Assembly (NCBI GenBank): GCA_964199315.1
Contig: OZ116704.1
Span: 3,224,001 to 3,288,000 of the forward strand
Length of the DNA stretch: 64,000 bases
Origin: Orbicella franksi
Lineage: Eukaryota
Direction: 5' to 3'
Shown: piece by piece, positions 545-61,797 of the stretch
Numbering within the stretch: the stretch's first letter is position 1
Layout: each line of letters begins with the position of its first letter
The notes under the pieces: generated by a model
The model's input: only the letters and a program-made list of their open reading frames with translations
Told to the model about the DNA's origin: nothing
Database searches by the model: none
Position numbers and translations under genes: made by a program

Positions 545-3500
545 GCCCTAAAGGAGAACCGGGCCCTCCAGGGCCGAAAGGAAATTCAGGTACATGACGT
601 ACTGCTTGGCTGATTATTAACTCTGCTAGTAATATAGCGCGCGGGCTCGTGTGTGTGTACGTTGACAACGCATTTACATGTCTCCTCTTCAAATAGTCAA
701 GAATACGGGTAGTCTGTCTTTCGCTTAGTCCGTTCTGCGTGACACGAAAGAAAACCGCGAGAAAAAAATGGCTCGCGAAATCCTGGCGGTGAGAAGCGCT
801 TCTCGTTCCCAGGATTTCGCGCGGCCATTTTTTCGTCGCGGTTTATTTACGGTCTCACTCGACGGGTTAAGCGAAAGAGGGAATACTCGTAGTCTACAAA
901 TAGTATTTCAAGGAGTTTTAAACTGAGTTTTTCAGCTCACACATGCACAAACTTTGTCGCTATAAGGTTTCTTTCACGATAGACTTTTTTTTTAAATACT
1001 GGGAATATCAGGTCATGGGCTCCTGGGAATATACATTTCCAATGTTCATCATTGCTTAATAGACCAATTTCGATATATTAAAATTCAGCCTAACACAATA
1101 GACCTCAGCACGAGGCTCTGGGGAAAAAACCCCACAAACTCTGTAGTTATTCCCCAGAGCTACGTACTGGGGTCTATTGTTTTAGGCTGAATTTTAATAT
1201 ATCGAAATTAGTCTATATAGAGCATCTTCACTCACGTGGCTAGCAGCCATGCAAATTATTGAATCAAAAGAAAGTGTTTACATAAGAAAAGAGTTCAACT
1301 CCCACAGGCTTGGCTAGGGACGGCAACATGGCCGCCGTTTCATTGTTTTCGGACACCAATATGGCTGCCGTGACGTCATGTGAAAGCACTCTATTCACAA
1401 TGACGTCAATCTGTTGTGGGTCACGTGATATGACCGTATATTGTGTTGACGTCACGAACGTGGATCGTGTGGAAGTCGGAAACTTCGATAAACTGTCCGG
1501 CTCTTTAAGTTGTCGCTAGTACAGCTATGCAATGCGCTTAAGCAGGAAATGAAAATTTCACCGAGACATGTCGGAACTATCTTTAGCACGTGCATCTTCG
1601 AAAGGGAAGATTTTTTAATGAAGTTGATGAACGCAAACTCGATATGCTTATTCGCCCCGGATACAAACGCACATAACATTATGTGTGAGCACAACGAGCG
1701 ACTAGTGTAACTAGCGATGTTATTTGAAAAATAAGAAATTGTAGCTCTGGCGTGCAATAATGCTGAAATTCCCTTCCACAAGTCATCAGGCTGGAGCTTA
1801 TCAGGCCGGTTTCTGTAGCGTGAAGCGACTAGGAGTATTTCTACTCCCCCTTGGATGGGATGCTAGTTCATCGCAGGGTTACCCCCTCCCCCCTCCCCGA
1901 GCATTAAGTTCGCCGGTACCCATTTATATACCAACAGTGAAACACATGTTTCCCAATAATCTACGTTTACGCCACCGAGGTTTTGATGAGATTCGGTGGC
2001 ACAAGGCGTCCTTGATAATCGATATTCAGCAAACATATTTTATTCATGTAATTTTCTAACCCGTTTCTATTTCTTTTTTCGTAGGTCGGCGAGGTAAAAA
2101 AGGTAAACGAGGTTAGTTTGTGTTTTGTAAGGTAATGAGGCTTGAATTCTCGCCATTTTTTTCCTTGCCATACTTCCTCGGGCTAGATAGGTAAAGTTCA
2201 ATTCTGAATTTATCAAACATATCATGTAGTTTGCCAGTCTATAAGAATTTAAGATTGTATCTGTTTAGCCTTTTTGGCTTGCTTAACGTAGTGCGTATGC
2301 TGTGGTTTGTTCAGTGATTGGCAGAGAATTAGCAAACCACAGTGCAAAAAGAAACACATTTCTGGTGATAATGGTGCTTTATGGTTAATCACCAACTGGC
2401 ACCTTTTCCTCAGGGCACAATGGAGATCCAGGCCCTCCCGGCGAAAAAGGCGAAAAAGGCGAAAAAGGCGAAAAAGGCGAAATAGGCTCTGTGGGCCCTC
2501 CAGGAATACAGGGACCCAAAGGAACAAAAGGTGAGCTTTCCACATAAGGTTATAAGGTGGTCATGTGACTGAACGTCACGTTTCAGAAATTGAAAGCAAA
2601 CAGTCTCAAAACTCTCGAAAATTAACGCGAAACCGAAGGAAAAAAAATAATCTTTTCATGTGAGCCTGTTACGATGCCGATTGGTTTTGGCTGTAGATTG
2701 TCAAAATTTTAGGCTGAAAATACATCTCGCTTACTTTGTTTAGTTTAACATGAACAAGGAAGTTTATGAGCAAAAAATACAGAGCTAAGAAATCATGAGA
2801 CACCAAAGTGAACATACTACTACTCTTGAAAGTCATTATAAAAGCAGGAAAACTGCCATTCCTAATAAATAACGTAAAGTCACTTACTTCAACTCAGTTT
2901 TACAATCCTGGTTGGAGTCCCCCTGACGTGGCATTTACTTCACTGCACGTTCTTCACGCTAGAATCAAACCAAGTAATACTTAAGTATTATGTCATGACT
3001 CTCTTTTTTATGTTTGTATTCCAGGAGACACAGGGCCCTCAGGTCCCGAGGGAGTAGGCGGTAAAAATGGCTCTCAGGGCCCCCCTGGCGTCAAGGGAGA
3101 CATGGGAACCAAAGGCGACATAGGTAGGAACTTGCGCTTATATTAACCCTATTGCACCTGAAATTTCTTCGTTCGCAAGCCTACCAAGGGGGATGTGGGA
3201 AAGTGTCCCCCTTCGTGCAATATGAGGATTCAAAAACTGTTAACTAAGATTCTGCATGGAATCAATTGTTCGTAAAAGCTAAAAACTTACTAAACAGAAA
3301 ATAAGGTTTGAAAACCGCCGGATTTTAGTTAGAAAAAGAAAACCCCTTGAAGACGTGATTTACGAAAAGTTGCGAAGTTTAGTTTGAAATTAGCACGAAC
3401 AGTTTGTGCCTCCCCGAGGCATGCGAACATTGTCAGAGAGCAATTGGCACTGGAAGGTAACAAAGTATCATTTTCAGATTGGGGAACTTATTCATATTTT

Positions 3501-4557
3501 ATAAATGAATGTACAGTACAGAGCGGGAACATTAGCACAAGACAAAATAGGCAAAGACAGGACAGCAGTCATGGCACTGAAAGCTCTTATCTTGTTTGTT
3601 TTGTTTTTGTTTTGTTTTTTTAATAGGACCTCCTGGGCCGCCCGGAGCGTCGGTGAGTAATCTACCGGCTGACTTTTGTACAAGTGTAGTGGTAAGGAAT
3701 TAGCGCATAATTTTACAAGAAATCAGCGAAAAGCGTTACTATCGTAAAGGCGGTTAGCCTAGGATCTGATCTCAGATAGGGCTCAGATATGAAACCCAGA
3801 AGGGTAAGGAAAAGATATTTGGCCTTGTAAAGAAGGATTCGAACCCACTGCCTTTGGAATTGGTGTTCCCTTTTCGTAATGGCGTTCGAGCTACGAGCAG
3901 TCGGAAATTGCCGGGCATAGATGGTAAAAGACATTGAATTTATAACGGTGACGATCATTCATTCATTCACACTGTATAATTACAAGGTCTTAACTTTTAA
4001 CTAATATATTTTTTTTATTGCCATCTAGATGAGTGAGAGCATCCACCTTGTTGGCGATGGACAAAAAATTCAAAACCCAAGTAATTTGCTTTTTTTTTTT
4101 ATGGCATCCTTGAAATGACTTAGTCTTTCTGGTCGAGTAAAGACGTGCATGATTCGGAAACTAATCACTAATCAAGTGCAAATATTCGTCAGCAGGCTTC
4201 CACCGCATTACAAACTGGGCATTGAAGCACAGGGAGGGCAGCATCTTGTACCACTCACCAACCGGGCACATTGAGGTGAAGAGAAAGGGCTATTACTACA
4301 TTTACAGCCAAATGTATTACTATGATGGCACCACCATACAGATGGGTCACAACACCTACATCAATCATGAAAAGGTCATGGAAAGTTCAGGGAGCGTTAT
4401 TAGTGCCGAAAGGAAGTACAACACCAAGTATCATGGCGGGGTATTCTTACTTCAGGAAAATGACACCATCTCCGTTCATATTCCATACACTGTGCACTAT
4501 TTCATGGATAGTGAGGGCAGCTTTTTCGGAGCCTTTTTGTTACACCATATCGATTAG
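545..4557 (+). CDS. Locus A (5' part lies upstream of the window): collagen-stalk TNF-superfamily (ectodysplasin-like) ligand
   Basis: GT-AG exons in one continuous frame: 545-589, 2085-2111 (GRRGKKGKR), 2414-2530, 3025-3123 (all phase 1-1 Gly-X-Y), 3627-3652 (GPPGPPGAS), 4029-4080 ([20 protein letters not shown] strand A), 4193/4196-4557 (THD body with [11 protein letters not shown] and FFGAFLL, TAG stop). Confidence 0.85.
700..896. mobile_element. Palindromic MITE
   Basis: Imperfect long inverted repeats: TCTTTCGCTTAGTCCG...AAAATGGC.CGCGAAATCCTGG / CCAGGATTTCGCG.GGCCATTTT...CGGGTTAAGCGAAAGA. Confidence 0.7.
1060..1215. mobile_element. Hairpin MITE
   Basis: TAGACCAATTTCGATATATTAAAATTCAGCCTA and its near-perfect reverse complement at the other end. 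Confidence 0.8.
1218..1393. mobile_element. MITE adjacent to 1060-1215
   Basis: TAGAG...TTCAC..ACGT / ACGTCATGTGAAAGCACTCTA imperfect TIRs. Confidence 0.55.
4193..4557 (+). CDS. THD-body exon A1 (TNF homology domain)
   Basis: [13 protein letters not shown] (TNF-family signature), [18 protein letters not shown], stop; overlaps ORF 4222..4557. Confidence 0.9.
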
Positions 4558-5221
4558 ATTAGATGATGGTCACACGCGGGAATTTAACCTCCTGAAAAGT
4601 TAAGGGGCTCCCTCCCTTGGTATATCCTTATGGGAGTACTGTAAATGACTTGTTACTCTTTTCGATCGTTCATTTAGACCAGACTTAAGGCTTCCACGGA
4701 TGTTTTGCGATAAAGGTCGATGTCTCGTTTTAGGCAAAGGCCATCATAGAACATAGTCTTTTGCTTTAGGTTAGAATTATGTTGTTTAGGGTACTCAACT
4801 CCAACAACCGAACGCATTCTGTTTAGCGCCCTAACTCAAAAATAATATCTTAGAGCGATATTATCCTTGTAAGTATATTTGAAGGTTGTAACATTTCAAG
4901 GGTGACATGGTCGTACAGCACTATGATATCGGGTTGTCTGTAGTGGCAAGAGGATTTTTCTAGCTTTCTAAACGGTATGATACGTAGATAAACTGTTGAT
5001 GTTTTAGGTGTCAAGTCAGTTGACGATGTTATGTCCAGTTGGCCTGTGGTCTCGATGCTGCCTGATCTGTGCTCCACGCCGTTTCCACGACACTTTACTG
5101 GCTCATTTCATTAATTTCATTCATTTATCTATCAAAAGCTTATGTCAAACACATCATGACCTATGATATTTTGTATCATTGCTCATGAAATACCTGCTTT
5201 TCAAATTGTATTCAAAGCGTA

Positions 5222-5235
5222 GGGAAAATTTCCCC
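5222..5235. promoter_or_regulatory. Palindromic kappaB-like site GGGAAAATTTCCCC between THD exons A1 and A2
   Basis: Motif match only. Confidence 0.3.
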
Positions 5236-5756
5236 TGATGTTCTTGGTATTGTTGTTGTTGTTGTTGATCATGATAATGACGACGATGCAAATATCGAAA
5301 ATAGCAGCGTACCAACCAATGGGATGCGAGCATTAACTGATAACAGAATGATAAGAGATGTGATTTATTTCTTGAAAAACAAATAGTTTTAGGATGAATT
5401 GTTTATGAATAGGCGATGGACTGTAGGCACATGACTGACTGTAAAACCTACAATGGGATTAAATGATTGGTTCATTAACTAATTCAATAGTCGTATGCAC
5501 TGTATTTGACTAAATGATTGATTAACAGAGTGCAGACGGAAAACACTAGATTAACTTTCAATCAATTGCTAGGGTGAAATATTAAGCACACAATGTACTG
5601 TTTTCTGATTTTATTGGGGATAACCAATGCTGAACGTGTTTTAGTGCCAACCTGACTCAGTGACTTTCCAATCCTGTCATGCCGTTGCTTTCAATCTGTG
5701 ATCATAACTATTCGCAGCGAATTCCTCTCACCCAGAATGGGTTTGTTTCTTCACAG

Positions 5757-6118
5757 TAGCAAGACGTACAGTTAGGAACTGGCTTGTAAAGTACAGATCA
5801 GGCAGAATTCAACACCATAATGGCATTGTGCAAGTACAAATATCTGGATTTTACTACGTGTATTCCCAGATGTTCTACCATGACGGCACACCACTTCAAA
5901 TGAGTCATCAGTTGTGCGTCAACTCAGACAAATTCTTGGAGAGTACATCTGCTGTTGTCAGTGAAGCTAGAAAATATAACACCAATTACAATGGCGGCGT
6001 AGTCTTACTAAACGCGACGGATCGCATTTCTGTCCGAACTCCTTTCTCGACTCGTTATTACATGAATCCGAGTTCAAGTTATTTTGGCGCATTCCTGCTT
6101 CATCCTACAACACGTTGA
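5757..6118 (+). CDS. THD-body exon A2, probable alternative terminal exon of locus A
   Basis: Acceptor tttcttcacag|, phase-1 entry, open to TGA at 6116-6118; NWLVK, GFYYVYSQMFY, YNGGVVLL, YFGAFLL. No strand-A exon or start codon of its own was found in 4558-5756. Confidence 0.75.
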
Positions 6119-8296
6119 CCTTTCCTGTCCCGAAATTGAACGCATTGTCTTCTAAGTTTGTTCTAGGAAGTTGGTGATATATCAAGGCTGCTACGTTCCG
6201 GCTAAGCTCGTCTCCCACCGACTACAGTTTTTCGTTATCCCTTGCCACCTTTCTGCCCGATCAATGCTGTAACAGGAAGTAACTTGTTGATCACTGTTGG
6301 GTTAAATACGGTTAAAGTGGTATTTAACTTCCTTAACACTGTTTGCAAGGCAAAATACCTCTTCACTTAGCAATTAACTGCTAGGAAACTGGCCGTGGTT
6401 GTAGGATCCTTGAACAGTTTAACCAAGCCCAAAAAAAAAAAAAAGATTTCTTGTTTGCGCAACTTTAGACCCTATTCATAAATGACTAGCACCGTGTCTT
6501 GCCCTTTAAACGCACGAGCTTCACACGTGCAGTTTTAATGCAAAATTTAATTTGCAGAGGACTGAGTGACAAAGACATTTGTTCACGAAAACGAGGCTGA
6601 AAAAGGCAGAACTGTCTTTATCCGTGCATGCAAACACTGATATCAAACTCTGCAACGATTGGACCAAAACACTCGACCTGCCAAAGATGGCCAAAAAAAT
6701 TGAAGGAGATGGTAAAGTGTCGTTAATTGACTTGAAATCATAACCTTAAAAAAACATCATATGGCGGCCATTTATGAAGACAGGTCAGAGTTATAACACA
6801 GAGCATCTCTAGTTTAGCTTACATGAAGCCCTTTGGTATCCAAAGGTTGTAAGATAGCATTTACTAAATGTGAGTATTGCTGATTCGCGTTAGACGGACA
6901 GCTGCTGTGCAAGTTAACTTAGCCTTTTAGTTTGTTATATTGAAAAATGCTATTATTCAGGCTAATAACTTTAATGTCTTTCATTTGTGTTGTTCAAGTT
7001 AAATTTTATAGCCATTTGACAATAGATGTGTTTAAGTATCGCTAAATGTATAAAACTGCGTTGTAATATTTTAATTAATATGAATATAAGCTGTAACTTT
7101 TCCTTTGCTGCGATCGAAATAAAATTATTGTAGTGAACTGTCGGTGTCGGAATGTTCTTCCGGATCATTAGAGATAAATATGGTAGAAAACTGGTGAAGT
7201 GGACATGAGTATGTATGGTCCAGAACGACATAAAACTAATCTGTACCTCACAATCAACCAGACAAAGACGGTGTTATACGGTAGCGTTCAATTTGAGTAG
7301 CCAAAGCTTGGACTCGTGATCGACCGACAAACGAAAGCAACACTTATTAATTACTAAATTCCCCTTTTCAAGATTTAGCACTGCTTTAAACGGAGTCACG
7401 CCAAGATTACGTTCGTTGACCACAATAGCTCTCATCCAATGGAGACAGTTCACGAGCTCATCACGGGGAACCATCTGGCTTGTCACGTGCAAACGTTTTG
7501 TGTGTCATCAGATCATACCGGGCAAAATTTGCCCCGACGATTCATTATGTGAAGAAACAAAATCTGAAAAAGTTACGGCAAAATTTTGAAGAGAAATAAG
7601 TAAAATTAATATCCAAAGTAGAAATCTTCACGAACATAAGCGATTGTTATTGCTGACTTAGTGATGGACATCTTATCGTGGAAATCGTTTTTACGGCCTG
7701 ATTTGCAGTACACCACCTTGAGAAGGTTTCACTGAGTGATGACGGAAGTTCTATCCAAATAAAACCCTTCCGACTTACATCATTCGGCAATATCAACTTC
7801 AACTTTTGAACACTAACTTTGATTTCGGACTTTCGGCTTTGGCTTTGGTACAAATACGATCATTATATCATATCATGGTCAAAGTTTCTCCAAGGTACGT
7901 GAAAATTGGACTTAGGAAACGTAGTCCTCAAACTGACGCCCAATTCGATGGCGACCTGAGTTTTCCATATCCTGTTAATTTTTGGTTTAAAATAAAATAT
8001 CCCAGTTTTAAAAGTCAACAGTTCTCCTTCTTGATATGCCGGAATATCTGTTCTTATGTCCCATATCCCATTAATTTTCCCCCAAAATATCTTAGTGGTA
8101 TCCCATAACTTTTTTACCTAAATATCTCGTATCTCGAAAAGCCCTAATAGGGCCTTTAAATTACAGATATATTCCATGTAGAAAGTAAAGTGGATCCGTT
8201 TGTAATTTCCCCCTATTTTCTTGGTAAACAATAGCACGCCAATAACATTTGGCTTAGAGCCAGATGGGTTTTCATGTGACTTTATCCCGGTTTTCC

Positions 8297-8308
8297 GGGA
8301 ATTTTCCC
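8297..8308. promoter_or_regulatory. kappaB-like site GGGAATTTTCCC upstream of the locus B ATG
   Basis: Fits GGGRN(N)WYYCC; ends 68 nt before ATG 8376; counterpart upstream of locus C. Confidence 0.5.
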
Positions 8309-8375
8309 TCACAGTTCGGTCATCATTGTCTGTTAAGCGGTCTGTTCTTGACGTTCTTGTCCTATCCCACCGGCC

Positions 8376-11300
8376 ATGCAAGAAAAAGAAAAGCAAAGAG
8401 GAGGCCAACTTCTCCCTGTTTTACTTGTTTGCATGTTGTTAGCCTGCGCGGGTCTTGTGTTTGCTGTTTACACCCACAAAGAACTCTGCTGGCTGAAAAC
8501 CCAAATCCGCGAACATGAGAAGCTTATCCAGACCTTACAACTCGGTAACAATGCGCGAGATATCCAGGTATGAGGTTTCTTTTCCGGTTTACAAGCGTCT
8601 GTGATTTTAAGAAAATTTCGGTATTGCCACGGACATACGAATTGTTTTTTAATGTCAGTTTTGTGTATGTTTCAGGGGTCAGAGGAAGTTCGTGTCCGGA
8701 GAAGCGCTCAAACTTCTTGTACTTGCGTCGGTTAGTGGCCCAGAATTTTTTGTACGGTAACAATTCTTATCCAGTTGACCTGTCTTAGGAGAGAGTTATG
8801 ACGATTTCAGTTATCACATAACCAATTCTCGAAGAGTATATTTGCACCTTGTTCGCTGGAAATTCCCCTGGGTTTACTTCTAGCTACTTCTTATAACAAT
8901 AATCTTCTGTAGCCTCCCACGCAGACGCTAAAGGGAGATGAGATTGCGTGACGAACCCAAGATTACAAGTAGCGTGACCAATAGCCTGCAGAACAGGCGG
9001 ATTAGCGGGGTAGAGAGCGAAACGCTAGAGCGAAACGCGATACACGAGCGCCGAGCGCGAGACGATTGTTATCAATTTTTTTCGTCCGGCGCTTCGCGCT
9101 CGTGGTCGCGCTCCGCGCTCGTTTATCGCGTCTCGCTCACTGCCCCGCTAATCCGCATGTTCTGCAGGCTACGTGACCAGGGTAATTTTTTAATTTTGTT
9201 TCCGTTTTCCTCATCTTTGAATTCTAGGAGCCCCAGGAAGACCAGGCCGGAGGGGGAAGCCTGGAAAGCCCGGTCATGCTGGCCAACGAGGCCCTCCAGG
9301 TAAATGAATTCATAGCTTAAAGTTGTAAAGTTGTCCTGATTTACTGAAACAAACTGGTAGAACCAACATGATCAAAAATTGACCCTGAAGGAACAATTGA
9401 CGCTTCTAGCATGGATTGACTGAATCACAGGATATTTTGCAAGGAACAGGGTCTTCTTCAAAAGACATCTTGGATTTGTCTTATAGGTCATGGAATACCG
9501 TTCCTAACCATCAAGAGTTTTCATCACTATGAGTTAGGTTTTCTCAGGCCAACTGGTTAAAGAGAAGTCCAGGATTTAATTCAGCAACAGTTCTTATTTC
9601 CCAATGATTTTTCCTGAGGGAAGTGGTTGTGGTGTCAGAAGTGCGTTTTAAAAATATATTCTCCGCCATTTCAATCAGTTATCCAGTTGGCCCCGTCTCC
9701 CAGACACAGTGAGGTGTGAGGTAAATTTCCCGCCGACCTCCAGTTAAACACTGACCGAGGATGAAGACCTGTACGAGCGAAGGATTTGGGGGGAAATGTT
9801 TTCTTCCTGGATAGCTTGAGTATTATAAGCCGTTCTGTATTCTTGAGGGAAAAAACTCAAGCCGGTGACGTCTTCATCCTCCGTTCTTTGTTTTCGTTTG
9901 TTTTTTTTTTTTCTTTTTTTTCTTTCATAAAGCGCTCGTTGATGTCCTCCTCGAAATCACAGCGTGAAGACTGTGATGCTTTCATTTGACAATTGTTTTA
10001 CTGCATCATCTCACTTGTTATTGTATTTCGGGCTTCTAGGATTCCCAGGGATGCGAGGCTTTCCGGGAATGTCAGGAGAACCCGGTCCCGTTGGTCCCCC
10101 GGGCCCTCCAGGTAATGACTTCACAGTTTGTAATGAAATTCATGAACAATAATAATCACAGCTGATGAAAGGTCTTCCCAGCCTCGTCAAGTTAATTCTA
10201 AGCGATTATACCACAATTAAGACCAATAATTGACCATAAATGTTTATCGATTTTGAATTTTTGCAAAAAACGGCCATTCAGTTCAGTTATTTTGGCCTCT
10301 GAATTTTGCTAAAAGGTTTGTCTTTCAGTTACTTTTCTAGTTCATTTTCAACTTCAGATAATCAATTTACACTTCTTCTGCTTCTTCAGTTGACTTTCGT
10401 ATTTTCTGTATCTGTATTTTGCATTTTTATCTACTTCGTGTCTTGGTTGTCTTGAGCGCTTCCCGGGGGAATTGCATGTTCTAGTCTGTAGTTCTGTTTC
10501 ATAGGATAATATTGTCTCTGGTCTAATACTTCATTACTTCATCTTTCATTTGCAGGAGAAAGAGGCTTCCAAGGTCCTGTTGGTCCGCCTGGCCCTCCAG
10601 GTAATGACATAATAGTTTATAACAAAATTAATGAAAATAATCATCAAACGAATGTTCTAATCACAACTGGAAGTATTCCTTCCTTCCTTCCGATATCCGT
10701 ACCGTTGTTCATTGTCAAACGGACTTTCGTCTTGAAATTTATTTTCGACTTCTTCTCAGCCCATAATTCGGGCATTAAATTGTGAGGTCAGTATCAAATC
10801 AACATAAGAATCACATTTACAAGAAAGGACAAACGCGCGTATGCGCTGTTATTATTCCAGATAGCTCCGAGTTGAGGAGCAAAGAGGTAGTCATTCCTCC
10901 CTTTAATCCTAGAAAGCATGCGGGAATACTCCCCTTATTATGATAAAGTGTTCTTTTTCTTTTCGCCAGACAACGCTGCTTGACAACCTTAATCCTTCTT
11001 TGATCAGCTTGTTTCTGTTTTTTAAATATTTGAATATGTTAGTGGGACGTCTTTGACTTGTAGGACGTGTACAAGGGACAAATAAACACAACTTGTTGGG
11101 AATTCAAGGAGAGCCCGGACCTCCAGGTGATGACCACGGCGGTAGCAAGTAGTAGGCTAACCAAGGCACTTGCCTCTGTCATTTTATCATTTTTGTTGTT
11201 TATAGTCACCATAAACACTCTAAATACCAAGGAAGAGAATTTATCCACGGACATTGCCATTGTCTGGCAACGGCCCTGATGACTTGATAGTTTACATTGA

Positions 11301-46224: not shown

Positions 46225-47570
46225 ATGGAAAATCAAGACAAGAAACAGAAGCTCTTCCTGCAGTCTCCGGTACTGCTCTTGATATGTTGTAGTATGCTTG
46301 TTGTAAGCGTTATAGCCGTCTCATCTCTTGGATTAAGTATCTTGTCTTTCAAGGAGATAACTTGACGTAGCGAAACACACTCTGATGCAGCGAGAAAGGT
46401 TAGTGGAACATTCAATACCTGGTTTATTTAGTGCCATTTTAAGTGAAGACTTTTCCAAAACATAAACGATGAATAAGGGGTGATCGCCATTGTATGAAGT
46501 CTTCGCTTATAGCAAAATTCTCGTTTTCCCTGAAGCCTTCAAGTTCGTAACGTGGTGAATATGGCTGAATTATCTAAATCTGACACCAATACTTGACCAA
46601 AATCTACGTCACTGTGTGCCGCTGACATTGTGTTTTGTGGGTGTGGCTTGAAATGTTTTTTTTTTTTTAATCCCTATGAGGTACCAATTCTAAAACAATA
46701 CATTAACTGACATTGACATTTTTGGGCTCAATACCCTAAAACGGTACAGCGAAAGCTCCTGCTGTGACCCTTTTTAGGCTGAACACCCTATAAATAGCGT
46801 GACAGAATCGTGTACTTACCGCAATCTCATCAACAATAGTGCGTTGTCCTTTAACTTTTTTGAAAGGTCAAGGACAACGCACAGGCTATTGTTTAAAAAC
46901 CTGTAATTTGACCATTCCTGAAGCCGTAGAGGTACCAAACCCGCTTTTTTAACCCCTAAAAGGTACAAAAAGCACCGTCGTAATTATTATGTGGGAGTCC
47001 CTCTTCCATTACCGAAGTGTACCCATAGTAATAGCAGGCATACATAACGCTTCTTCTTTACAATCTTCTTTATCCAAAATTAATTTCTCCTCCTTGACCA
47101 TTTGATATCTGATCTCGAAGAATCTGTTTTCTTAGCTTACTAGTTTTTTTTCTCCTAGGGAAGTGAAATCATCCATCTTGTTGGCGGGGGAAAAGCTATA
47201 TTCACAAAAAAAAAATGACGTTGTAGTCGATGGATGGATTTTGAACGATAAAACTGGCAATATCTCCTTTCACCAAGGATCAAAAATTCTAGTGCAGAGG
47301 TCCGGCTACTACTACGCATACAGCCAAATGTATTACGATGGTGTTGACAGCGCACGCAGGGATATCATTGGCCGCACTACCTACCTACATGATACTATGA
47401 TCATGAAAAGTTGGGGCAACTGGGGAAATACCACTTACCATGGAGGAGTTTTCCACCTTGAGAAATTCGATATTTTGACAGTTAAAATTCCAAAGAATGG
47501 CACGGCAGTCAAGTTGGATGGAAAGGGTACCTTTTTCGGAGCGTTTTTACTACAGGCTGATAAGATGTAA
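46225..47570 (+). pseudogene. Locus D: collagen-less TM-TNF ligand, disrupted (pseudogene or null allele)
   Basis: Exon 1 46225-46398 (TM VLLLICCSMLVVSVIAVSSLGL) has an in-frame TGA at 46363-46365. Exon 2 47159-47570 starts GSEIIHLVGGG, but the THD body (VVDGW...GYYYAYSQMYY...FFGAFLL) is in another frame across an A10 run at 47206-47215. Confidence 0.7.
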
Positions 47571-48793
47571 GTCTCTCGGACGAAAACTGAAAGAGGTAGT
47601 TTGCATATTACAACAACTTCGATGATTCGGACAGGAATAAGGAAGCCCAATCTTATGTTCCAAAATGGCCTTACGGAATTAGGCGTCAACTCCTAGTTCT
47701 TTAAAATATCATTGTAATATCTATTTGCACTGTATACGATTAATGATGATAGTTAAACACGTCTGACATGATTTGTAAAGTAATTTGTTTGTCGTGTCAG
47801 AATTTAAGCATGTAAATGTAAATCGATACAGCGTTTGAATAAAGTTTATATTCTGCCTTTTGGAGCTTTTCGTTGCGTGGTCTTCTGCATGCAAACGTTT
47901 TTTAAAGTAAATGTTTCAAGGGTTAACCACTGTAAAACGCGGGGCCAAGTTTTTCCTAGGCATGTGACCTTGTGTTAAAACTTTCCGAGGACTTTTTGGA
48001 ACTGTCGAACCAGACGCTCTATTCCGTCAAGTACTCCTTATAACGGCCTATATATACGAGGAAGCTGCGTCCGAAAGGGGTACCTATTTCAACCTTCTGG
48101 TATATATAAAAGGGTAGGGATTTCACAAATTGAGGTTTATGAAAAAGTAGGGAAATCTTTCATTTAGGTATCTAAAAGGGCTTTTAGTTAAAATATTTCG
48201 AACAGACGCAACTTATAGTTGTATCATTTGATATATTATGCACTACATGAAATGTGAGGAAGATTTCCTTTTTTGCGATCTATTCATAATATGGGTCGGT
48301 TATGAAAGCAGGGTACCTTTATGTTCTATCAAACTGGTATACAGAAGGGCAAGGGGTTAGACCTCAGGGCGGAGCCTCCCCGATAAAACTTTGTAGAGTC
48401 CTCTGGGCTCTGTTTGGTGATGAAATAAAAGAGATGAGCAGACATTTTCTTGCTTCTAAGGCATTTCATCATGTACGTTACCATACATCGCGTGACAACC
48501 TTTACTTGCGTGATAAACATCACTGCGACCTCTTGGAAACCATAGTATTAAAATACAAGAAATTGCAGTCTCTTAGCTTTTCTAAGAACTGACAGTCCGT
48601 ACAAAGAGTGCAGTAAACATTTGGGAATGGTAACGAGAGCTTTTTAAAACTAGGACAATGAGCCATTGAGTACATCCAAGTCACGTGATCCCGTTCACTT
48701 TCCTAGAAAAAAAAATCTTGGACGCTTGACATTTATCCTATAGCGACAAGATGGTGTTTTTAGGAAGTCTGTAATACCTTAGAAGCAAGAAAC

Positions 48794-51700
48794 ATGCATA
48801 AACCTCAAGCAAGGGTCATCATTTTGCCCTGGTGGATGTTCGTTGTGTTTGCTGCGACACTGGCGACGTTATTCCCGACATTCTTGTATTGTGTCCGCGA
48901 GATTGCCGTCTTAAAATCGCGGGTCGATGCACAACAGCTGACAATTGAAACTCTAGAAACCGTCACAGCGCAGATTCGACTTCGAACTGTGGGCGACGAA
49001 GGAACGAGCGACAAAACAAACGAGGTGTTGGAGAGGCTTTTAAAACTGGAGGTTTGACCTTTTTTCGCTGTCTGCTTTAGATAAAATGATCATTTCGAAC
49101 GACCTAAGGGTCTTTATGTAGCGGTGGTTTGGCATTACACGAGTAATACACATGAACAAAGCTTGCCAAGCGCAAGTTTTTCTGTGACCTTCATTGGGTT
49201 TAGACAAGGTTTTAAACGTTGCTGGACTTCCTTATAAACTAATCTAGACACTGTCCAGACGGTGATCCTCTAGAAAAGCGCGATAGATATTCATGTGAAT
49301 GAAATTAGGACTATTTCCGCGTTGTTAACTGTTTGTTTGTGTTGTAGGACGAAGGAGAGTTGCCGGTCCGGATAAAGCGGGAGGCCAGTAACTGTCGTTG
49401 CAGGCGAGGTATATAAAACCATTTTGGTGTTTATCGTTCTACATGTATCTCTACAGCTAAAGAAGTCGATTAGCCAGTAACATGCATCAGAATTAACGGC
49501 TGGGGTGTGAGGTGAGGGTATACAGGGGATGCGGTAATGCTGAAAATTACGTCAGTGCCGAAGACATCTCTATTCTGATCTGAGCTGCCCCCATCCATCT
49601 CCGTCTTTTCCCCTCCCCCTCTTCGCAGGGAACTTTTGTTCTCGTTGATCGTAGTTGTGCACAAGGTTACATCCCAAGGATTTGCGGTCAGAAACCCGTG
49701 AACCGTGTCTGACGAGTGATTGCTTGAATACGGCATCCCCATGTAGCACTCCTTTATTATTCCTCGAAGTCTGTCTTAGTTTGGATCAATCTCTGTATTC
49801 TCAGTTACGTTTGGGCTTACTCTGCCTAAAACACGTCATTTACACGCTCATGTTTGCTTGCATTCAACCTCTATCCAGTTTTCAATGAGAATTCTAAAAA
49901 TTTTGCCTTTATTCAACACTTGGCAACAATCCATAAAATGCGTCTTTCTCGGAAGTCTTGTATCATATCGCTACGTAGTTCGTTTTCGAAGAGAACAAAA
50001 CAACACTGACTAGCCTCGAAAATAAAAAGGGAACTCGCTCTAAAATGATCACTGATACAAACGAAACAATTCGATTTTCAAGTTGATATAAAATCAAGCT
50101 CTCGACGATTTAAGTTTTGTTGTTGTGATTGTCATACCACTAGAAATAATCTTTCAATGACAAGCTATAGTTATCGTAACAATACTTTATTGGCTTACAT
50201 GAGCATGTCCTGTCCTTGTAAAATGACACGCTAAGAATTTTTTTTGTTCTAAATGTATGCATGTGTTCTGGCACATTCTTTAACTTCGGATGTCAATGCT
50301 GTAAAATGTTTGAGCTACTTTGCCTTGAAAAGTCGAAAAGCCTTTTTCAAAAACACACGCTGAATGGAAAGTTCAAACCTGGGTAGCGGTGAACAATTGA
50401 GAATTCTAAACATTTCGGCAAATGGGATAAAATGAAGTTCATCGTAAGCCAATACTGTCAACAAACCGTTATCCTGACTGATCGACAGTTAGTCATTATT
50501 GCGCGTGACTCAGTATCACAACTACTGTCACGCAACCAACTGCAAGGCCATTGCCACGCTACAAACAATTTATTTATAGCCCCATTTTTTTGTATTGTTT
50601 TTCTGTTCTAGGACCAAAAGGAGAGCAGGGGCAAAAAGGTGAGACACTTCAGTGATGATACTTGATGCTTCGTACAAAGAAATCATAATTTTTTTTTTTG
50701 TCGCGTGTTCGACTGTAAAGGCTAAAGCTATTTGTAGGCTTGTAGGCTATTCACTGAAATATAGTTCCAGGTAAGTAAAGCGAAAAGTATAACTTAAGGT
50801 AAATATGAAGTGAACAGTATGACCTGCTGTTGACAACTGAGTGATTCAAAAGAGCGGTTTTCAATTGAGTGTCGAAAGTAATCTAGCAAATACTTTGGTT
50901 TTGGTGTTATTACGGTTTGATATTGGATGAGTAGTCTAACTGATAAATGATTGGTTTGATTTTGGTTTTACGAGACGCAATTGAAAGCCGCTGTAATCTC
51001 TATTAATTTGTAGTGCTGCACTCGCTCCGGCTCCTCCCGCATTTGTTTTTTTAATTGAAATCTTGCTCTCTTTAGGTCAGCGTGGACGAAGAGGAAGACA
51101 AGGTAATGATCGGTTTTCATAAAACATGTAATTTCGCGATTTATTTGAGAAAAAATCCTTTAGAAAAATCAATAAAAGCACATAAATAATTTGCCAAGTT
51201 AAACTGTGCATTCCTAAAGCGGCTACTGAAGTGTTGTTCCCAGAAGCTCTGATTGCTTTGCTAAACACCAAGAAATGGAGACCTCACAAAGAAGTAGGAA
51301 AGTGAGCCAGCATTAGTTACGGCGGTTACGCATGTTCAGAAATCGTTATTGAACTTGAACGTATGCGCGCAATCAAATCGGAACCAGAATTTTCTGATTC
51401 TGGTAGTTGATTTTCGCTGACCGAAAACGCGCAGGTAGACTGATTGCTGGTAGACTGGAACTAATAGTGCATGCGTAGTAAGCCAAGATGGTGTTACGTG
51501 AGCCACTTTGCAAGAGAGATGAAGTAAAAGTGCCCATAACACGGTAATACTGGTGCGAGCTTGCTCCGTTAGGAGCTTAAACAACTGCTTGCTAAAACTT
51601 GCAAAGGCGCGTCGTGTTACCAAGCAGGGATACTGACATAAAGGAACAATTGCGAGCTCTACAAGGTTCTGAGGCAATGTCCATAATGAAATTCTCTTCT

Positions 51701-54700
51701 CAGGTATTAAGCAGTGTTTTAAATTCCCCTTTCAATAAGAAAACCAACAAAAACGAAAAAAATGACTGAGGTAAGTGCCTAGGTTTGCGTCATACCGGTT
51801 ACGTCCCTGGTAGATGGTCTAATCCTCTACAACTATGAGCCAAGAGACAACGTAAGGCTGATTGAACGGTACGGCAGCTACATTGTCAATTCTAATATTT
51901 TGAAAAGCACGGATAGATGATATTATTTTGAAACGGTGCTAATCAGCATTGCGTCTTCTTCTTGGCTCAGCAAAACCATGAACGGTTCACAACTGTCTTT
52001 ATTTTTATTTTTATTATTTTTTTTCAGGTGTTAAAGGCGTTAAGGGCGAACCCGGAAATACCGGGCCTCCAGGCAGAGATGGATTGAAAGGGGACACTGG
52101 AGAAACGGGTACGTTTCAAACACGCGAAAAGGTGTACATCTGTTTTTATAATCCATTTATAATCCATATCTGAGTGATATTTCCCAGTTTTCAAAAACTG
52201 ATTATTAACAAACATGTTAATTATCCAGTTTTCGAAAATTATTTGAAGGGTAATAAACAGAATAGCCTCCATTTGGCGCTCCTGTTACGCTTTCGGGAAA
52301 CTGTTCGCTTCTCGGAACAGATAATGTCCGCGGACAAATATCCGAGCATATCTTCGCGCCAAATGGAGACTATTGTTTATATATCGAACATTGAAAAACG
52401 TACCTCTTATCCAGGCTTCTGCTGCATCTGTTTCAGGTGACCAAGGGGAGCCTGGAGCCCAAGGTAGTGTTAACTTGTGTGAGGTGTACCTTGAAAGAGA
52501 ACAATGGTGGTTTAGTAATCGTCGATAATTTCAGGGAAATTAATGTTGTGTTTGTCCATCCTGTTCAATATTCCGTAGACAATTGTCATATTTTACTTGT
52601 GTTAAAAATTATTTTGTGATATGTGGATGAAGTCAGAATACAAATTAATTAAAGTTATCGCCGTCTTACAGAAGTTAATTGTTGCCGTCTTTTACAGAAG
52701 TAAGAAGGACATTACAGCGGTATCGCAAAGGGTATGGGATCGAATCTCGCTCAAGCTTCGAATGTATATATCTATTGTAGCTCGCTAGTGCTTTAGCTAG
52801 TTATGCGCTAACTGCTTGTACAATAACTCTAAAGCTGGTTTTTCTTGTTTTTAAACAGGTTTGCCTGGCTCCGTGATGCGCGTGAGTACTCTCGTTATTT
52901 CTCCGGTCGTCTTTAACTTTAATTGTTGAGACAAAACTCATGAAAGGGGAGATATTACACATCTCAATTCTTAATGATAACACATAGGCATGTTTGCTAA
53001 TAATCAGATTTAACGACGGAGAAATTTCACAGTTGACGGTGAGAGAAGATGAAGAGTGTTAATCCCTTATATAGGCCTTACTTTCAAGGTTATCTCGTTA
53101 TTTGTGGATATGGTATGCGGGGTATTATCCAGCAGATAATATTAGGGAACTTGAGCAAACCACGACGACGACGGCAACGAGAACGTCACCTTACCAAAAC
53201 AATACCTTTGCACGTGCTTTGTAAATCTTTGTACATTTCTTTGTACATTTCTTTGCTGTCCTCTGCAAAACAAGAACGTGAAATGACTAAGTTCTGCGTA
53301 GTTTGAGAAACGCGAATGACGACGGTTAATTTTTCGTATTTCCGTTTGGAATTGAATGCTGTCATTGCATATTTGGCCTGACGACTATATATAGCCGGAG
53401 CCACTGGCGTACCGAACAGATCTAGACAATTTCGAATTTCGCTGGTAAAATATAAATTATTTTTGACTACGCATCGTCCTCGACGTCGCCGTTTTCATTG
53501 CTTAAGCTCCCTATTACCACCGGCGTTGCCACTTGATGTTTTCGTGGAGAATTAAAATGTGTGTAACGCCACTTGAGCTGTCCACGTGAGCACTGGCAAT
53601 TTCTAGACGCGATCCTGAGATTTCTGAAGCCGGGTGGTGATCTAAAATGATAAAAAATAACTAGCGAGGGATTGCCTTGGGAATTAGGCCTACATGGGGA
53701 GTTAACTCTCTCCTATCGTTTATCCTCTCTTGCTGATAGTAAGTTACAGTAAGTCTCTTGAAGCTGGAAAGCTCGCCACAGCATTTATTACGCGTTAATT
53801 TGGTGTACAGCCACAAAACCACCCAGAAGTTGTACTCTTTGCCTTAGTACTTATAAATAAATAAATAAACAAACAAACAAACAAATAAATAAATAACTTT
53901 ATTTATATGTGAAATGTATTTAGTGCTCTTGTGCTAATTGGGGACACTGTAAATGAATAAACAATTAATGCAAATAGGAGGCTGACCAGTTGGTTATTTA
54001 CACAACGCGGTCGGGGAGTTGAACTCGGGACAACCGAGAACAAATCCAGATAACGGTAGAAAGGATTTATATATAATCGCGTCTGTTCTGGTTTCAATTT
54101 CGTTTCAGCCAATCGCAACAGATTCAGCGCACATTGTTGGGTATGGTGAGCATATTAACCCGCCAACAGGTACAACAAAATGTTAGTGTTATTTTTCTTG
54201 ATTTCTTTATTGTAGATACAGGAGTTTTTCCGTGAATTTACGGGGATTACATTATTAAGTGGTTTGATAAGTCTTCAGTAGCGTCAATTCCAATTTTTGG
54301 GCAATTTCTCTTTTAGTTTTTTCATTGACTCTGCCAGTTAGGAGACTTGTGAAGGTTAGATGCTTTTTTGGCCTTATTACCTTTCCTGAAAAGTGAAATA
54401 TCGTTGACAAGAGCACGAGAAAAGTGTTATTATCGCTTTTCAAAGGAAAACGCCAATGGATTCCTCCCTTGCAGACGATTTTTTCCGTGGCATTGGGTGA
54501 TGAGACAAAAAGATGTTTGCATTGCTATATAGGAGCTCGCTGTGTGTGTCTTCAGACGTGTTTCGTTTAAACTGGTGTGCAAAAGCACACCAATTTAAAC
54601 AATTGGGTCTCTCCGATATGTCCACCACGAAAACCCTCGCTTGTTTTCGTCGTTCTTGTTAGCTTTCAACTATAATTCTCATTCCTCTCTTTTAAAACGC

Positions 54701-55130
54701 TAAAACGCTCTTAGCTTCTCCCACAGTTCACCGCATCACCAACTGGAAGCTGAGCCACAAAACTGGAAGTATCAAGTTCGTCAGCAACAGCTTCCTTGTG
54801 ATTGGTACAGCAGGTTACTACTTCGTGTACAGCCAACTGTTCTATTACGCCGGGGACACCCTCTTCATGGGCCATTACACATACATCAATGAGGACCCTG
54901 TCATGCGCAGTCTGAGCAGCGTGATTAGCGAGACAAAGAAGTACAACACAAATTACCAAGGAGCGGTATTCCTGCTCAGGAGAGGCGACAAAATCTCCGT
55001 GCGAATCCCGTTCACAAAGTCCTACTTTATGAACAGGGAGACCAGCTATTTTGGTGCCTTCTTGGTAAGCCCCGTGTCTAATACCACCAGTGTTGCCGAA
55101 TCAACGGGCGTTGGTCAGGATCTTCAGTAA
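48794..55130 (+). CDS. Locus E: intact type II TM collagen-TNF (ectodysplasin-like) ligand, 322 aa predicted
   Basis: Exons 48794-49051 (TM plus coiled coil), 49348-49408 (furin RIKR|E, CRC), collagen 50612-50638, 51076-51102, 52028-52108, 52437-52463, 52859-52881, strand A 54109-54169 (DSAHIVGYG), THD 54727-55130 (GYYFVYSQLFY, YFGAFLV, TAA). Total 969 nt in a continuous frame. Confidence 0.85.
53143..53513. mobile_element. MITE in an intron of locus E
   Basis: TAGGGAACTTGAGCAA / TTGCTTAAGCTCCCTA TIRs with ACGACG-rich subtermini. Confidence 0.75.
54727..55130 (+). CDS. THD-body exon of locus E
   Basis: ITNWKL, GYYFVYSQLFYY, YQGAVFLL, YFGAFLV, then a Ser/Thr-rich tail and stop. Confidence 0.9.
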
Positions 55131-55307
55131 AACGAGACTTGTTTGGTTTCCACGTAAACTAAACCGTGAACAGACCAACTATATTTTTTTCTGATCAATT
55201 TAAACTGCTACCTTGCATATCGAGACAAAACTCTTTCTGCTGCCCGCCCTAATCCTTGCTTCGTAACTTCACCCGTGTAACCAGGGTAACATAATCACGA
55301 GGAGCCC

Positions 55308-55400
55308 TAGTCTCCCCCGCAGAGTTCTTTTGGGACGTCACGCAACGCTCTTTGGGAGAGCGTTGCGTGACATCCCAAAAGAACTGCTGCGGAGGACACC
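55308..55400. repeat. Short hairpin MITE downstream of the locus E stop
   Basis: GTTCTTTTGGGACGTCACGCAACGCTCT / AGAGCGTTGCGTGACATCCCAAAAGAAC inverted repeat. Confidence 0.65.
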
Positions 55401-58400: not shown

Positions 58401-61320
58401 CCGCTGTATTGAAAGACTGAAAAAAAATTAACTCTTTTTAAAAACGTATCCCACACTAGAGCAATGCAAACAATAATAAATGCTGTATCCGAAAACGAAT
58501 AACCGAGTGCTTATGGGGAGACTGAGCACTAGTACATGAAATTTCTGTATGACCCTTTAAGGGCCTTTTTAGTAAGGGCCTTACTAAAATTGTTTAGCTT
58601 TAGAAACCTGCTCTGCTTACCATTCACGCAAAAAAGTCTTTCAGACAGGTTTTTGAGCTATTTTGTTTTTAAATTAAAAAAAAAAGGAAAAATTTCTCAT
58701 TTTGTTATATTAGATTAAGAAAAATTAGTCTTCCAGATTTTATGTTCGAATTTCACATCATGAATGATTTACTGGGCCTCATGCTCAGCAAACAGTAATT
58801 AGAGGAATTAGAGGTGATATTTCTCATTGGTATAACTTTTGTTTGTACCAACTCTGAAGCACCACTCAGTTCCACTGTTTATGAGCAACCAATCAGGTTT
58901 GAGAAGATAACTTGTGTGTGCCTTTGGCCCGAATAACAAATTCGGTGTTTAATTAGAAACTTTCTATGTAAACCGTTGATATCTAGTCTGCTGTCAAAAT
59001 TGGGCATCAGTCATTTACCTTACCAAAAATTACACCCTGTAATTACTGAACTTCATGTGATAAAGTAAAAAAGCGAATTACTTAATTCTCACCCGAAAGT
59101 ATGGGCACGCGCCGAACCGTGAAACCCTCCCTTAAATTGCAATTGCAATTGCATTCATACGATGTCACGTCTTTACAGCAATACAGGATGCTTAACTGGT
59201 TTGTGGACTGTTAAACATAAAGTCTCTCTTTACAATATACTTAAAAAGTACAGCAAACAACTAAAGAGAATTGATGAAGACCATCAGCTAAAAGATATTG
59301 CCTTGTCATCTGAGAACTACCGGTAGCGCTAAAATAAACGAATAGTAATAAGTAAGGATAATTAAGACTCAGGCTTGTGACAGACAGTGTCAGTTTAAAG
59401 AACACTGTTACAGGTTTAATCTCGTTTTACCTGATCAATGTTAGAGCTAGTAAAGCTGCCCAATTATCATATCGCTTGCTGATTGGCTCTTTATTTTTTT
59501 GTAATGGTTTCACTTTCACTTTCGATTCCTGATTCCAGGCATTCTTTACACGCTTCACGTATCGAAATATACTCCTAGTTTGATGATATGCGTACAAAGA
59601 GAGGTCCTTCTTAGAGTTCGTATGAATTAGAAAGTTACCGTTTATTCGATTCTCAAGGGTCTTTTTTATAGATCGCGTTTTGACAACAGAGGTGGCATCA
59701 GGTTGCATTCTGAGAAATGAAAACAGAGGAAGTCGAATGAACGTGTGTCGTGTTCTTCGAATAATAGCGAGTCTTTTATTGGATTCATAGAGGAGCATTT
59801 AAGGTGAGTAGCTTTCTTCTTGTTTTTCAATCTTTCCAATTTTATGTCTTTAATTCCCCTATAGTGTCCATGATTCAGAACATCCGGAAACCAATCGGAT
59901 ATCATGCAATTCAAACGTCTTCGGCAGAAGTGCTAAAAGCGACGCGCGAATTAAGAACATCTCCGTTTCCGGGTCACGGCTCAAGGCTATAACGATTCGT
60001 TTGTGTTCATGTTTTGTTTGTTCGTTGAAACAGTCCTAATAACTTCGAAATGCGATCAGTGTAGAGAAGATTTATGGACGAAAAAAACGATGGTTTCGAT
60101 TCGTTGTCAAAGAAATGAATCAGTTGGTTTTCACCGCGATCGAACGTTTTGTGTTTACTTAATTCAGTACCGGTGTCGTTTCAACAACGCAGAATGTACT
60201 TAACGCAGCCAGAAGTCTCTTTCATTTGCGACATTGAGTCTGAATTATTCACTGATTCTGCTGATGTTCTACACCGCCATGGATTAAAAAAAAAGAAAAA
60301 AAACGAGTTGCCAAATTCTCCATTTGCAGCCGGCTTGTGTATAGTCGTTTTGCTGTGGAGTTAATACACTAATTTTGAAAAATGCAATTGAGTGAACTAG
60401 AGGTAAATTTCGGATTTCCGTTTGGCACCACCAGAGACAGTTTCCTGTTATAGCTATTGTTATGGCTATAAATTAATTGTATGGATTACATTCATTCGCT
60501 CAGCTAGCATTTTCGTCTGAAGTTACGCAATTTCATGCTTACACGAATATGTTCTTCGTCCATACAGTCCTTAAATCCGCGACATGGTTCAGATTTTACG
60601 TGATCTGTCAGTGCCCGTGTAGAAGCCAAAGTCCAGCGTTTAACTAATGTGTTCGACAATCACATCACAATGACATACTTTTAATGAAATTGTGTAATCT
60701 ATTAAGGTACAGAAGGAGGCCTTTTTAAAGCAATAACACACAGACAGCTCTGTAACATACGTTGAAAACTCAACTGTCGTGTATACAACGAAATGCAAAA
60801 ATTGCTCCTTGCATTGTAACGCGACACGACTCGGCCATTGCTTCAGACTCACTTAGAAAATTTATTCTGTAGACGTTTCTAGGTATTTAGCTTGTTTTTC
60901 TCGAAGAATCCCAACAGAATGGATTATAAAATGACAGCTAACAACTGACAATGTACGGACATAAGTGTACATATAGTTTTATTCTTTTGTATTGTTAACC
61001 TTAGAAAGTTTATCCAAACGTAAACATAGGTCCATTTTGCATAATAATACTTCGGTAAGAGACTTCTGAGAAATGAATAGGTTTCCCTGAAAAGAAACTT
61101 CAAAATGGAATCCGCAGTCCCCAAGAAATCATGACTCAACAAGTGATGCCGTAAACACAGATCACGTGTCCAGTACAATATGTGGCGAAGATATCACAGA
61201 TAGAAGTATCGAAATTCCGTGAAATACTTCAGCTTCCTTGACTTGTAAAGGCAAACGGGCGCCTCATAAACACACTATTGAGTCGGCTTCGAGGAAATAC
61301 CGTAAAGCAACACAGGCAAG

Positions 61321-61797
61321 ATGACTGAAGTACGACAAAGTTTTTCGCAGCAAAATCAATCTCTTCGATGGATGAAGACTTTAGTCGGTGTGATTATCGC
61401 TGGCTCGTTGTTGTTTGTCTTGTTCAAAGAACTACACTCGTTGTCCAAGGGCCTGGAAGAATCGAGCAAATCGCTGGAAGAATTGTCCAACAGACTGGCG
61501 GAGGAAGAGCAAAAGAACGTGAAATTACGTAAAGAGCTCGGACGTGTCAAGGAGAAGATGGACAATATACTGCAAGTGTTTTCAAATATGCAAAAGGTGA
61601 CTTTTGTGTGAAGGTCTTTCCTACATTAAAGGCTAATCTGCAAGCCTAGCTAAATTCATTATGCGTAATTTCCCACCTTCCCTACTTAAAACATCCATAA
61701 GCTTCTTTATCGGTGAGTTACGACCTTAGGTTAACTTTGCTTCTTCTTTTGATTTGTACTTTACAGGTCTCCCGAGACAAAAGAGCTAAAGACAAAC
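61321..61797 (+). CDS. Locus F (3' part not found in window): type II TM protein with coiled coil and furin site, probably the next cluster member
   Basis: Exon 61321-61596 (TM LVGVIIAGSLLFVLF, heptad-rich stalk, AAG|gtgact) and exon 61767-61797 (VSRDKR|AKDK, phase 0 to 1), the same first-two-exon layout as B, C and E. No collagen or THD exon was seen before 64000. Confidence 0.6.

Follow-up and report, generated by a model that had tools for sequence, protein, structure and literature searches.

Array of ectodysplasin-like ligand genes

A 64,000-nucleotide (nt) stretch of the Orbicella franksi genome (assembly GCA_964199315.1, contig OZ116704.1, contig positions 3224001-3288000, hereafter the window) raises the question of how a cluster of genes for collagen-stalked tumour necrosis factor (TNF) ligands can vary the ligands it encodes. 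Our analysis makes it likely that the window is the middle of a tandem array of at least eight same-strand genes for type-II membrane ligands of the TNF superfamily, that these have the layout of ectodysplasin (EDA), and that the array is old and conserved. More tentatively, we propose that this one array diversifies its heads at the RNA level, by a choice between two anciently diverged TNF homology domains (THDs) at locus A and by a natural two-head chain at locus C. The locus letters A to F are those of an earlier reading of the DNA from its letters (the sequence-only reading), D1 is the second THD-body exon of locus C, Y and Z are upstream genes, and coordinates are window positions unless stated otherwise.

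The window holds seven THD-body exons on the + strand (Table 1), all of which score 42.7-51.2 bits against Pfam TNF (PF00229; cut-off 23). A genome-wide Pfam TNF search of the 497-Mb assembly returned 31 THD matches, and nine of these fall in the array (contig 3,210,514-3,279,067). Read from their exon borders, the loci share one order of parts. An anchor exon, in phase 0 in all cases (282, 192, 192, 258 and 276 nt), is followed by a furin/CxC exon that ends in phase 1 (70, 55, 55 and 61 nt), by collagen exons, by a microexon that returns the reading to phase 0 (26, 26, 26 and 23 nt in A, B, C and E), by a strand-A exon (52 nt in A, 49 in B, 40 in C, 61 or 73 in E; typically ...SIHLVG...) and by a THD-body exon entered in phase 1. 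Every collagen exon is a multiple of nine nucleotides in phase 1 (A 45, 27, 117 and 99 nt; B 72, 72, 45, 72, 72, 72, 63 and 81; C 72 and 90; E 27, 27, 81 and 27). The joined models of A, B, C and E have only AG...GT borders with matching phases and 0 internal stops. The common exon grammar of same-strand loci in the sequence-only reading is therefore borne out, but its count of six loci needs correction: the THD loci A to E are real, whereas the array is larger, with two further complete collagen-THD genes (Z and Y) read from the flanking DNA upstream, and the sixth locus, F, has no THD in the window.

Direct counting gave 35 Gly-X-Y triplets in A, 67 in B, 21 in C, 20 in E and 0 in D, in agreement with the stalks of at least 34 (A), about 70 (B), about 20 (C and E) and no triplets (D) that had been estimated before. 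These are uninterrupted runs of the PF01391 type (20-67 triplets in A, B, C and E), and a Gly-X-Y scan placed 19 + strand collagen stretches 5' of the THDs and nearly none on the opposite strand. A type-II topology, i.e., a short charged N-terminus followed by a hydrophobic stretch of 20-26 residues, can be seen by eye in the sequences of A, B, C, D, E and F. The furin motif is intact in A (RNKR), B (RVRR) and E (RIKR), degraded in C (RISR) and absent from D. The chain of anchor, furin site, collagen stalk and THD, which the sequence-only reading had recognised as the ectodysplasin architecture, is present in A, B, E and the upstream gene Y. Locus C has the same layout but carries the degraded motif, and locus D is not of this type because it lacks both stalk and furin site. 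The loci thus do differ in stalk length, furin motif and THD number, as had been claimed.

The layout that we assign to these ligands begins with a short cytoplasmic tail and a signal-anchor helix, continues with a coiled coil, a furin site, a CxC pair and a triple-helical collagen stalk, and ends in a C-terminal THD. By analogy with the known family, stalk and THD would hold three chains together as a trimer that the CxC pair would lock, and furin would free a soluble trimer in A, B and E and not in C or D. The head would then bind one of the many TNF receptors of the coral. Stalk length changes through gain, loss and duplication of the collagen exons, and three variations by splicing seem to affect the head, at loci C, A and E.

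Relatives in other corals and age of the array

The same arrangement of parts recurs in full-length proteins of Stylophora, Pocillopora, Porites, Montipora, Acropora, Oculina, Desmophyllum, Actinia and Nematostella. Many of these proteins come from transcript assemblies, and most carry precomputed Collagen (PF01391) and TNF Pfam matches. The locus B model is collinear with Oculina G026997 (64% identity), which has a stalk of about 70 triplets as well, the long form of locus E matches Oculina G026999 end to end (82% identity), and the locus A model with the THD-body exon A1 shares 76-78% identity with Desmophyllum and Pocillopora proteins along its entire length. The gene order Y...B...E also agrees with the Oculina gene numbers G026995, G026997 and G026999.

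In a maximum likelihood tree of 51 THDs, those of A2, B, D1, E, Y and Z each cluster with scleractinian orthologues from Oculina, Stylophora, Pocillopora or Porites at 97-100% bootstrap. The A1 THD joins its orthologues at weaker support (89/90), and the first THD of locus C and D2 have no supported placement in this tree. The ratio of nonsynonymous to synonymous substitution rates (dN/dS) of the extra THD exons is 0.08-0.20. Because of these orthologue clades and the low dN/dS, we regard the array as old and conserved, and the birth-and-death array proposed in the sequence-only reading is not upheld, since most of the paralogues tested have stony-coral orthologues. A more local event is visible between loci B and C (8373-9308 and 27689-29885), where the first three exons and their introns share 82-88% DNA identity while the THD exons share 70%. 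This suggests one recent event, which may have been gene conversion or a partial duplication of the 5' half.

Compared with solved structures, the THD profile scores highest with EDA-A2 (83 bits) and EDA-A1 (79 bits), followed by TRAIL (61 bits) and by APRIL, BAFF and Eiger (47-49 bits). The apparent closeness to EDA is a score ranking. Locus D counts against the overall reading: its anchor open reading frame (ORF) stops at a TGA (46363-46365), 33 nt before its only strong donor (AAG/GTTAGT at 46398; here and below a slash marks the exon border). That donor fits the phase of the THD exon only in the neighbouring frame, and the only in-frame, phase-compatible donor is weak; as assembled, locus D therefore has no good phase-compatible splice site that joins its anchor ORF and its THD exon. 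The early stop would stem from a one-base frameshift or from an assembly error, so that a broken gene, an assembly that is wrong by one base and some other splicing are all possible. A frameshift at strand A was considered separately, as a canonical-looking strand A lies in another frame beside an A10 run, and was rejected because the assembled frame matches strand A of the Pocillopora orthologue.

A putative two-THD chain at locus C

The exon structure of locus C and its counterparts in other corals make it probable that this locus encodes two THDs in one chain. From the donor after the first THD (THD1), splicing would lead to a 29-nt microexon, on to a second strand-A exon (VRQSIYLSGDDTNLRNP) and from there to the second THD, giving one chain with two heads. 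The donor after B- and C-type THDs is kept in several corals and paralogues, and the sequence beyond it diverges immediately. The second strand-A exon and D1 are conserved in a contig of a related coral (L003), in which the THDs lie 1.1 kb apart; no anchor exon stands between the two THDs there or in the window, which argues against a separate second gene. The same contig has an alignable linker microexon of 32 nt, and Stylophora proteins have a 29-nt equivalent, so that microexons of 29, 32 and 29 nt hold the frame in three corals.

The tandem form itself occurs in Stylophora, where it comes from two annotation pipelines. PFX34031.1, XP_022792743.1 and XP_022792748.1 consist of THD1, a linker of about 10 or 28 residues, strand A and a D1-type second THD. 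The 432-residue tandem model of locus C is collinear with PFX34031.1 at 67% identity, and D1 forms a 100/100 clade with the second THD of that protein (dN/dS 0.20). The two THDs of locus C are in different old clades and are therefore not a recent internal duplication. A collagen-like linker exon, as in Stylophora isoform X1, was looked for between the two THDs of locus C, and only the 29-nt microexon was found. For the Stylophora two-THD protein P0422, a structure prediction of a three-copy complex had a score of 0.30 (mark 0.32) and carries no weight either way.

Several observations speak against a two-THD chain. The coral models that support it are largely automatic predictions, and those from Stylophora with the tandem form begin within THD1 or are missing its strand A. 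Two-THD database proteins of 452-650 residues were rejected as support for tandem heads, as all of them are two whole genes fused, with a second anchor in mid-chain; in this ligand family gene predictors do fuse neighbours (all 452-650-residue models examined). Among transcript-derived proteins, none with a spliced D1-type THD was found, and all D1-type matches are exon-level ORFs. Locus B, moreover, shares the conserved donor after its THD, yet no second THD follows downstream. The fusion of neighbours by gene predictors and the lack of a transcript-derived D1-type protein would also fit a second THD unit (40348-43310) that lies outside the locus C chain, either as a separate gene with unrecognised first exons or as an alternative 3' module. 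The module would be joined from 31643 to 40934, both in phase 0, and this join is likewise in frame, while the linker microexon is weakly alignable. On this reading, the tandem proteins of Stylophora would reflect predictions that were merged or that read through. Given the missing anchor exon, the conserved donor with abrupt divergence past it and the frame-keeping microexons, we consider this unlikely, and favour two THDs in one chain at locus C.

Probable alternative last exons at locus A

Locus A also has two THD-body exons, A1 and A2, which we read as mutually exclusive last exons and not as two heads of one chain, because no donor precedes the stop that closes A1 and A2 shares the strand-A exon and the entry phase of A1. 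A2 is the sole THD body of the array without a strand-A exon of its own. One strand-A exon would thus splice to either last exon, with RefSeq isoforms in two corals and purifying selection on A2 in keeping with such a choice. The model of A with A2 agrees in 356/356 residues with RefSeq XP_020603222.1 ('macrophage receptor MARCO-like isoform X3 [Orbicella faveolata]'), apart from one extra Glu-Lys-Gly in the window. This protein joins 4080 to 5757 ('...QNP-I-ARRTVRNW...'), and independent predictions show the same join of strand A to A2 in Porites lutea isoform X2 and in a P. evermanni model. The THD tree groups the A2-type THDs in one clade (100/100), sister to most other paralogues.

Isoform X3 is itself an automatic model, and A2 might be a separate gene or a relic, with X3 as a prediction artefact. 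We find this improbable, as the ORF of A2 is intact with a dN/dS of 0.08-0.15, the 1.2 kb before A2 holds neither a strand-A nor an anchor exon, and the acceptor phase fits the common strand-A exon. Low RNA depth over both A1 and A2 in two runs points the same way.

The stalk of locus A contains a 9-nt tandem repeat, GGCGAAAAA, in a collagen exon (2440-2487, 5.3 copies), which encodes (Glu-Lys-Gly)n. As this assembly has four of these units and the RefSeq protein three, stalk length appears to be polymorphic.

Two donors at locus E and RNA reads

A third variation is predicted at locus E, where two donors lie 12 nt apart (...ACAG/GTACAACAAAAT/GTTAGT) and share one acceptor at 54727. Their use would yield 'V' or 'GTTKF' just past strand A, i.e., 'PPT-V-HRITNW' or 'PPT-GTTKF-HRITNW'. 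Both forms are found among Acropora muricata isoforms (X1, X8) and in Porites and Oculina models.

RNA reads from four polyA runs were aligned to positions 200-6199 of the window to examine the choice between A1 and A2 at locus A. In two of the runs depth was 1-4 over A1, its 3' flank and A2, and the collagen exons were nearly empty. Across these positions and runs no junction passed the threshold, at an exon depth of 0-4. The reads were too sparse to reveal junctions, which counts against the splice models in that these rest on sequence logic and on the models of other species. Within an intron of locus A (1000-1400 and 1800-2000), depth rises to 70-110 from partly fitting reads that run on into unrelated sequence and represent transcribed repeats located elsewhere.

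TNF or C1q family

The sequence-only reading had proposed a comparison with C1q as a check on family identity, and its outcome favours TNF. The C1q profile (PF00386) reaches at most 18.7 bits on the seven exons, short of its cut-off of 23.7. C1q does not score better, because it stays under its cut-off while TNF passes its own. NCBI names for the orthologues are inconsistent (several ectodysplasin-A-like, others MARCO-like, collagen X-like, C1q-related and TNFSF10-like). Some database entries bear names ('Complement C1q and TNF-related protein 9', 'MARCO-like', 'C1q-related factor-like') that suggest otherwise, and there are weak C1q Pfam matches (E 0.002-0.016). Even so, it is very improbable that the genes encode C1q-domain collagen proteins (C1q/TNF-related or collectin/MARCO-like), as TNF outscores C1q in every exon, the best solved relatives are EDA, TRAIL, APRIL, BAFF and Eiger with no C1q chain among 60 of 75 matches (E <=0.01), and the N-terminal anchor and furin sites are those of TNF ligands whereas C1q proteins are secreted via a signal peptide.

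Comparison with known systems

EDA and the coral ligands are alike in their type-II membrane topology, their furin site, their C-terminal THD and a collagen stalk of some 20 triplets. The donors of locus E, a few codons apart within the THD, also resemble the switch between EDA-A1 and EDA-A2, which according to PMC8685516 differ by two residues and bind different receptors. Unlike EDA, which is a single gene, the coral has many paralogues in one array, with stalks of 0-67 triplets and with a CxC pair before the collagen.

Collagen-bearing TNFs of cnidarians are already published. Hydra HyTNF, two of five Acropora TNFs and two of four Nematostella TNFs have been called EDA-like (bioRxiv 10.1101/2019.12.13.875351), and they share phylum and anchor-collagen-THD layout with the array. 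That study lists single genes, with no tandem array, exon grammar, alternative THD exons or two-THD chain. The genes of the array are likewise already in RefSeq, as automatic annotations. For head variation by splicing in collagen-stalked TNF ligands, no description was found in the literature searched.

Locus A has a parallel in human TWE-PRIL, a hybrid of the adjacent TWEAK and APRIL genes in which the anchor and stalk of one ligand are spliced to a downstream THD. TWE-PRIL is mentioned in PMC6862657. Its logic is that of isoform X3 of locus A, with the difference that TWE-PRIL joins two complete genes, while A2 lacks separate 5' exons and is one of two last exons of a single gene. For locus C, the nearest likeness is to predicted invertebrate TNF ligands with 2-9 THDs ('in-frame paralogues') in Hydra, oyster and ostracod (bioRxiv 10.1101/2024.07.27.603686). 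These differ from the locus C chain in being predicted proteins only, none of them reported with a collagen stalk.

If the two-THD chain is real, a locus C trimer would show two different THD trimers in series and would correspond in nature to the dual-acting TNF fusion proteins that have been engineered. The predicted splice events would alter which receptor a given stalk delivers to. Corals have dozens of TNF receptors, an expansion that is well known, and their TNF signalling is tied to heat-stress and cell-death responses. Their TNF ligands are poorly catalogued, under misleading automatic names (MARCO-like, C1q-like, collagen X-like), and the array provides curated ligand gene models, an old and conserved set, for a major Caribbean reef builder.

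Features of the individual loci

Table 1. Exons and ORFs of the ligand loci in window coordinates.
Locus	Feature	Position	Strand	Remarks
A	Anchor exon and RNKR/CPC exon	1.4-1.9 kb 5' of window start	+	In flanking DNA
A	Collagen exons	545-589 (45 nt), 2085-2111 (27 nt), 2414-2530 (117 nt), 3025-3123 (99 nt)	+	AG/GT borders, phase 1
A	Microexon	3627-3652	+	26 nt, GPPGPPGAS; phase 1 to phase 0
A	Strand-A exon	4029-4080	+	Common to both THD-body exons
A	THD-body exon A1	4196-4557	+	PF00229 48 bits; stop at end, no donor before stop
A	THD-body exon A2	5757-6118	+	PF00229 45.5 bits; read as alternative last exon
B	Anchor exon	8376-8567	+	Phase 0
B	RVRR/CTC exon	8676-8730	+	
B	Seven collagen exons	9228-9299, 10040-10111, 10556-10600, 11812-11883, 11973-12044, 12300-12371, 12529-12591	+	
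B	3' collagen exon	21006-21086	+	
B	Microexon	21860-21885	+	
B	Strand-A exon	21975-22023	+	
B	THD body	22661-23052	+	
C	Anchor exon	27692-27883	+	
C	RISR/CTC exon	27998-28052	+	Furin motif degraded
C	Collagen exons	29805-29876, 30978-31067	+	
C	Microexon	31618-31643	+	
C	Strand-A exon	31734-31773	+	
C	First THD-body exon	35698-36078	+	PF00229 43 bits; ends at phase-1 donor CAAG/GTAAAC
C	Predicted linker microexon	40348-40376	+	29 nt, DETTTTSPAS; phase 1 to phase 0
C	Second strand-A exon	40934-40985	+	Conserved
C	Second THD-body exon (D1)	42949-43310	+	PF00229 51 bits; with stop
D	Anchor ORF	46225-46365	+	No collagen, no furin site
D	Single exon, strand A and THD body	47159-47570	+	
E	Anchor	48794-49051	+	
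E	RIKR/CRC exon	49348-49408	+	
E	Collagen exons	50612-50638, 51076-51102, 52028-52108, 52437-52463	+	
E	Microexon	52859-52881	+	
E	Strand-A exon	54109-54169 or 54109-54181	+	Two donors
E	THD body	54727-55130	+	
F	Anchor/coiled-coil exon	61321-61596	+	Phase 0
F	RDKR exon	61767-61797	+	31 nt

Locus F is probably a very divergent THD gene, judging from an ORF downstream. This is its only THD-like ORF, which lies past the window end (158 residues, contig 3291620-3292093, 3.6 kb beyond), contains GGIYYVYCHL and ends in ...NSFGMFLVS. It matches Pfam TNF at E=0.086 (13.2 bits), under the cut-off. Its single-sequence fold has a predicted local distance difference test (pLDDT) value of 56, and Foldseek returned generic jelly rolls, among them carbohydrate-binding modules, GITRL and CD40L, at a TM-score of 0.4-0.5. 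Its language-model features point to cnidarian TNF clusters (0.93).

In locus B, the collagen exon pairs that start at 11812 and 11973 and at 12300 and 12529 are duplicates of one another. The conserved donor-like site after its THD (CCAG/GTAAACAG) follows position 23029, with a stop 7 codons on. An 18-nt collagen-like stretch at 11099-11134 (GIQGEPGPPG) with a weak acceptor is probably a decayed collagen exon copy and was kept out of the model. The long intron of locus B contains a long terminal repeat (LTR) retrotransposon of about 7.1 kb (13700-20770). Its repeats are 99-100% identical over the two 300-nt stretches compared (starting at 13700 and 14346 on the left, at 19833 and 20470 on the right), and the insertion is probably recent. 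The ORFs of the element (14947-19472) encode gag, zinc-knuckle and aspartyl-protease parts, with no reverse transcriptase ORF among them.

Repeats are also found in locus C. An intron holds a 268-residue ORF on the - strand (28598-29404) with a match to Pfam DUF5641 (E=3e-17), which looks like a tail fragment of a retroelement polyprotein. The intron before the first THD exon carries a 100-nt unit in 2.8 copies (33369-33651, 96% matches), and an (AATGAC)20 microsatellite (41003-41121) begins 18 nt past the donor of the second strand-A exon.

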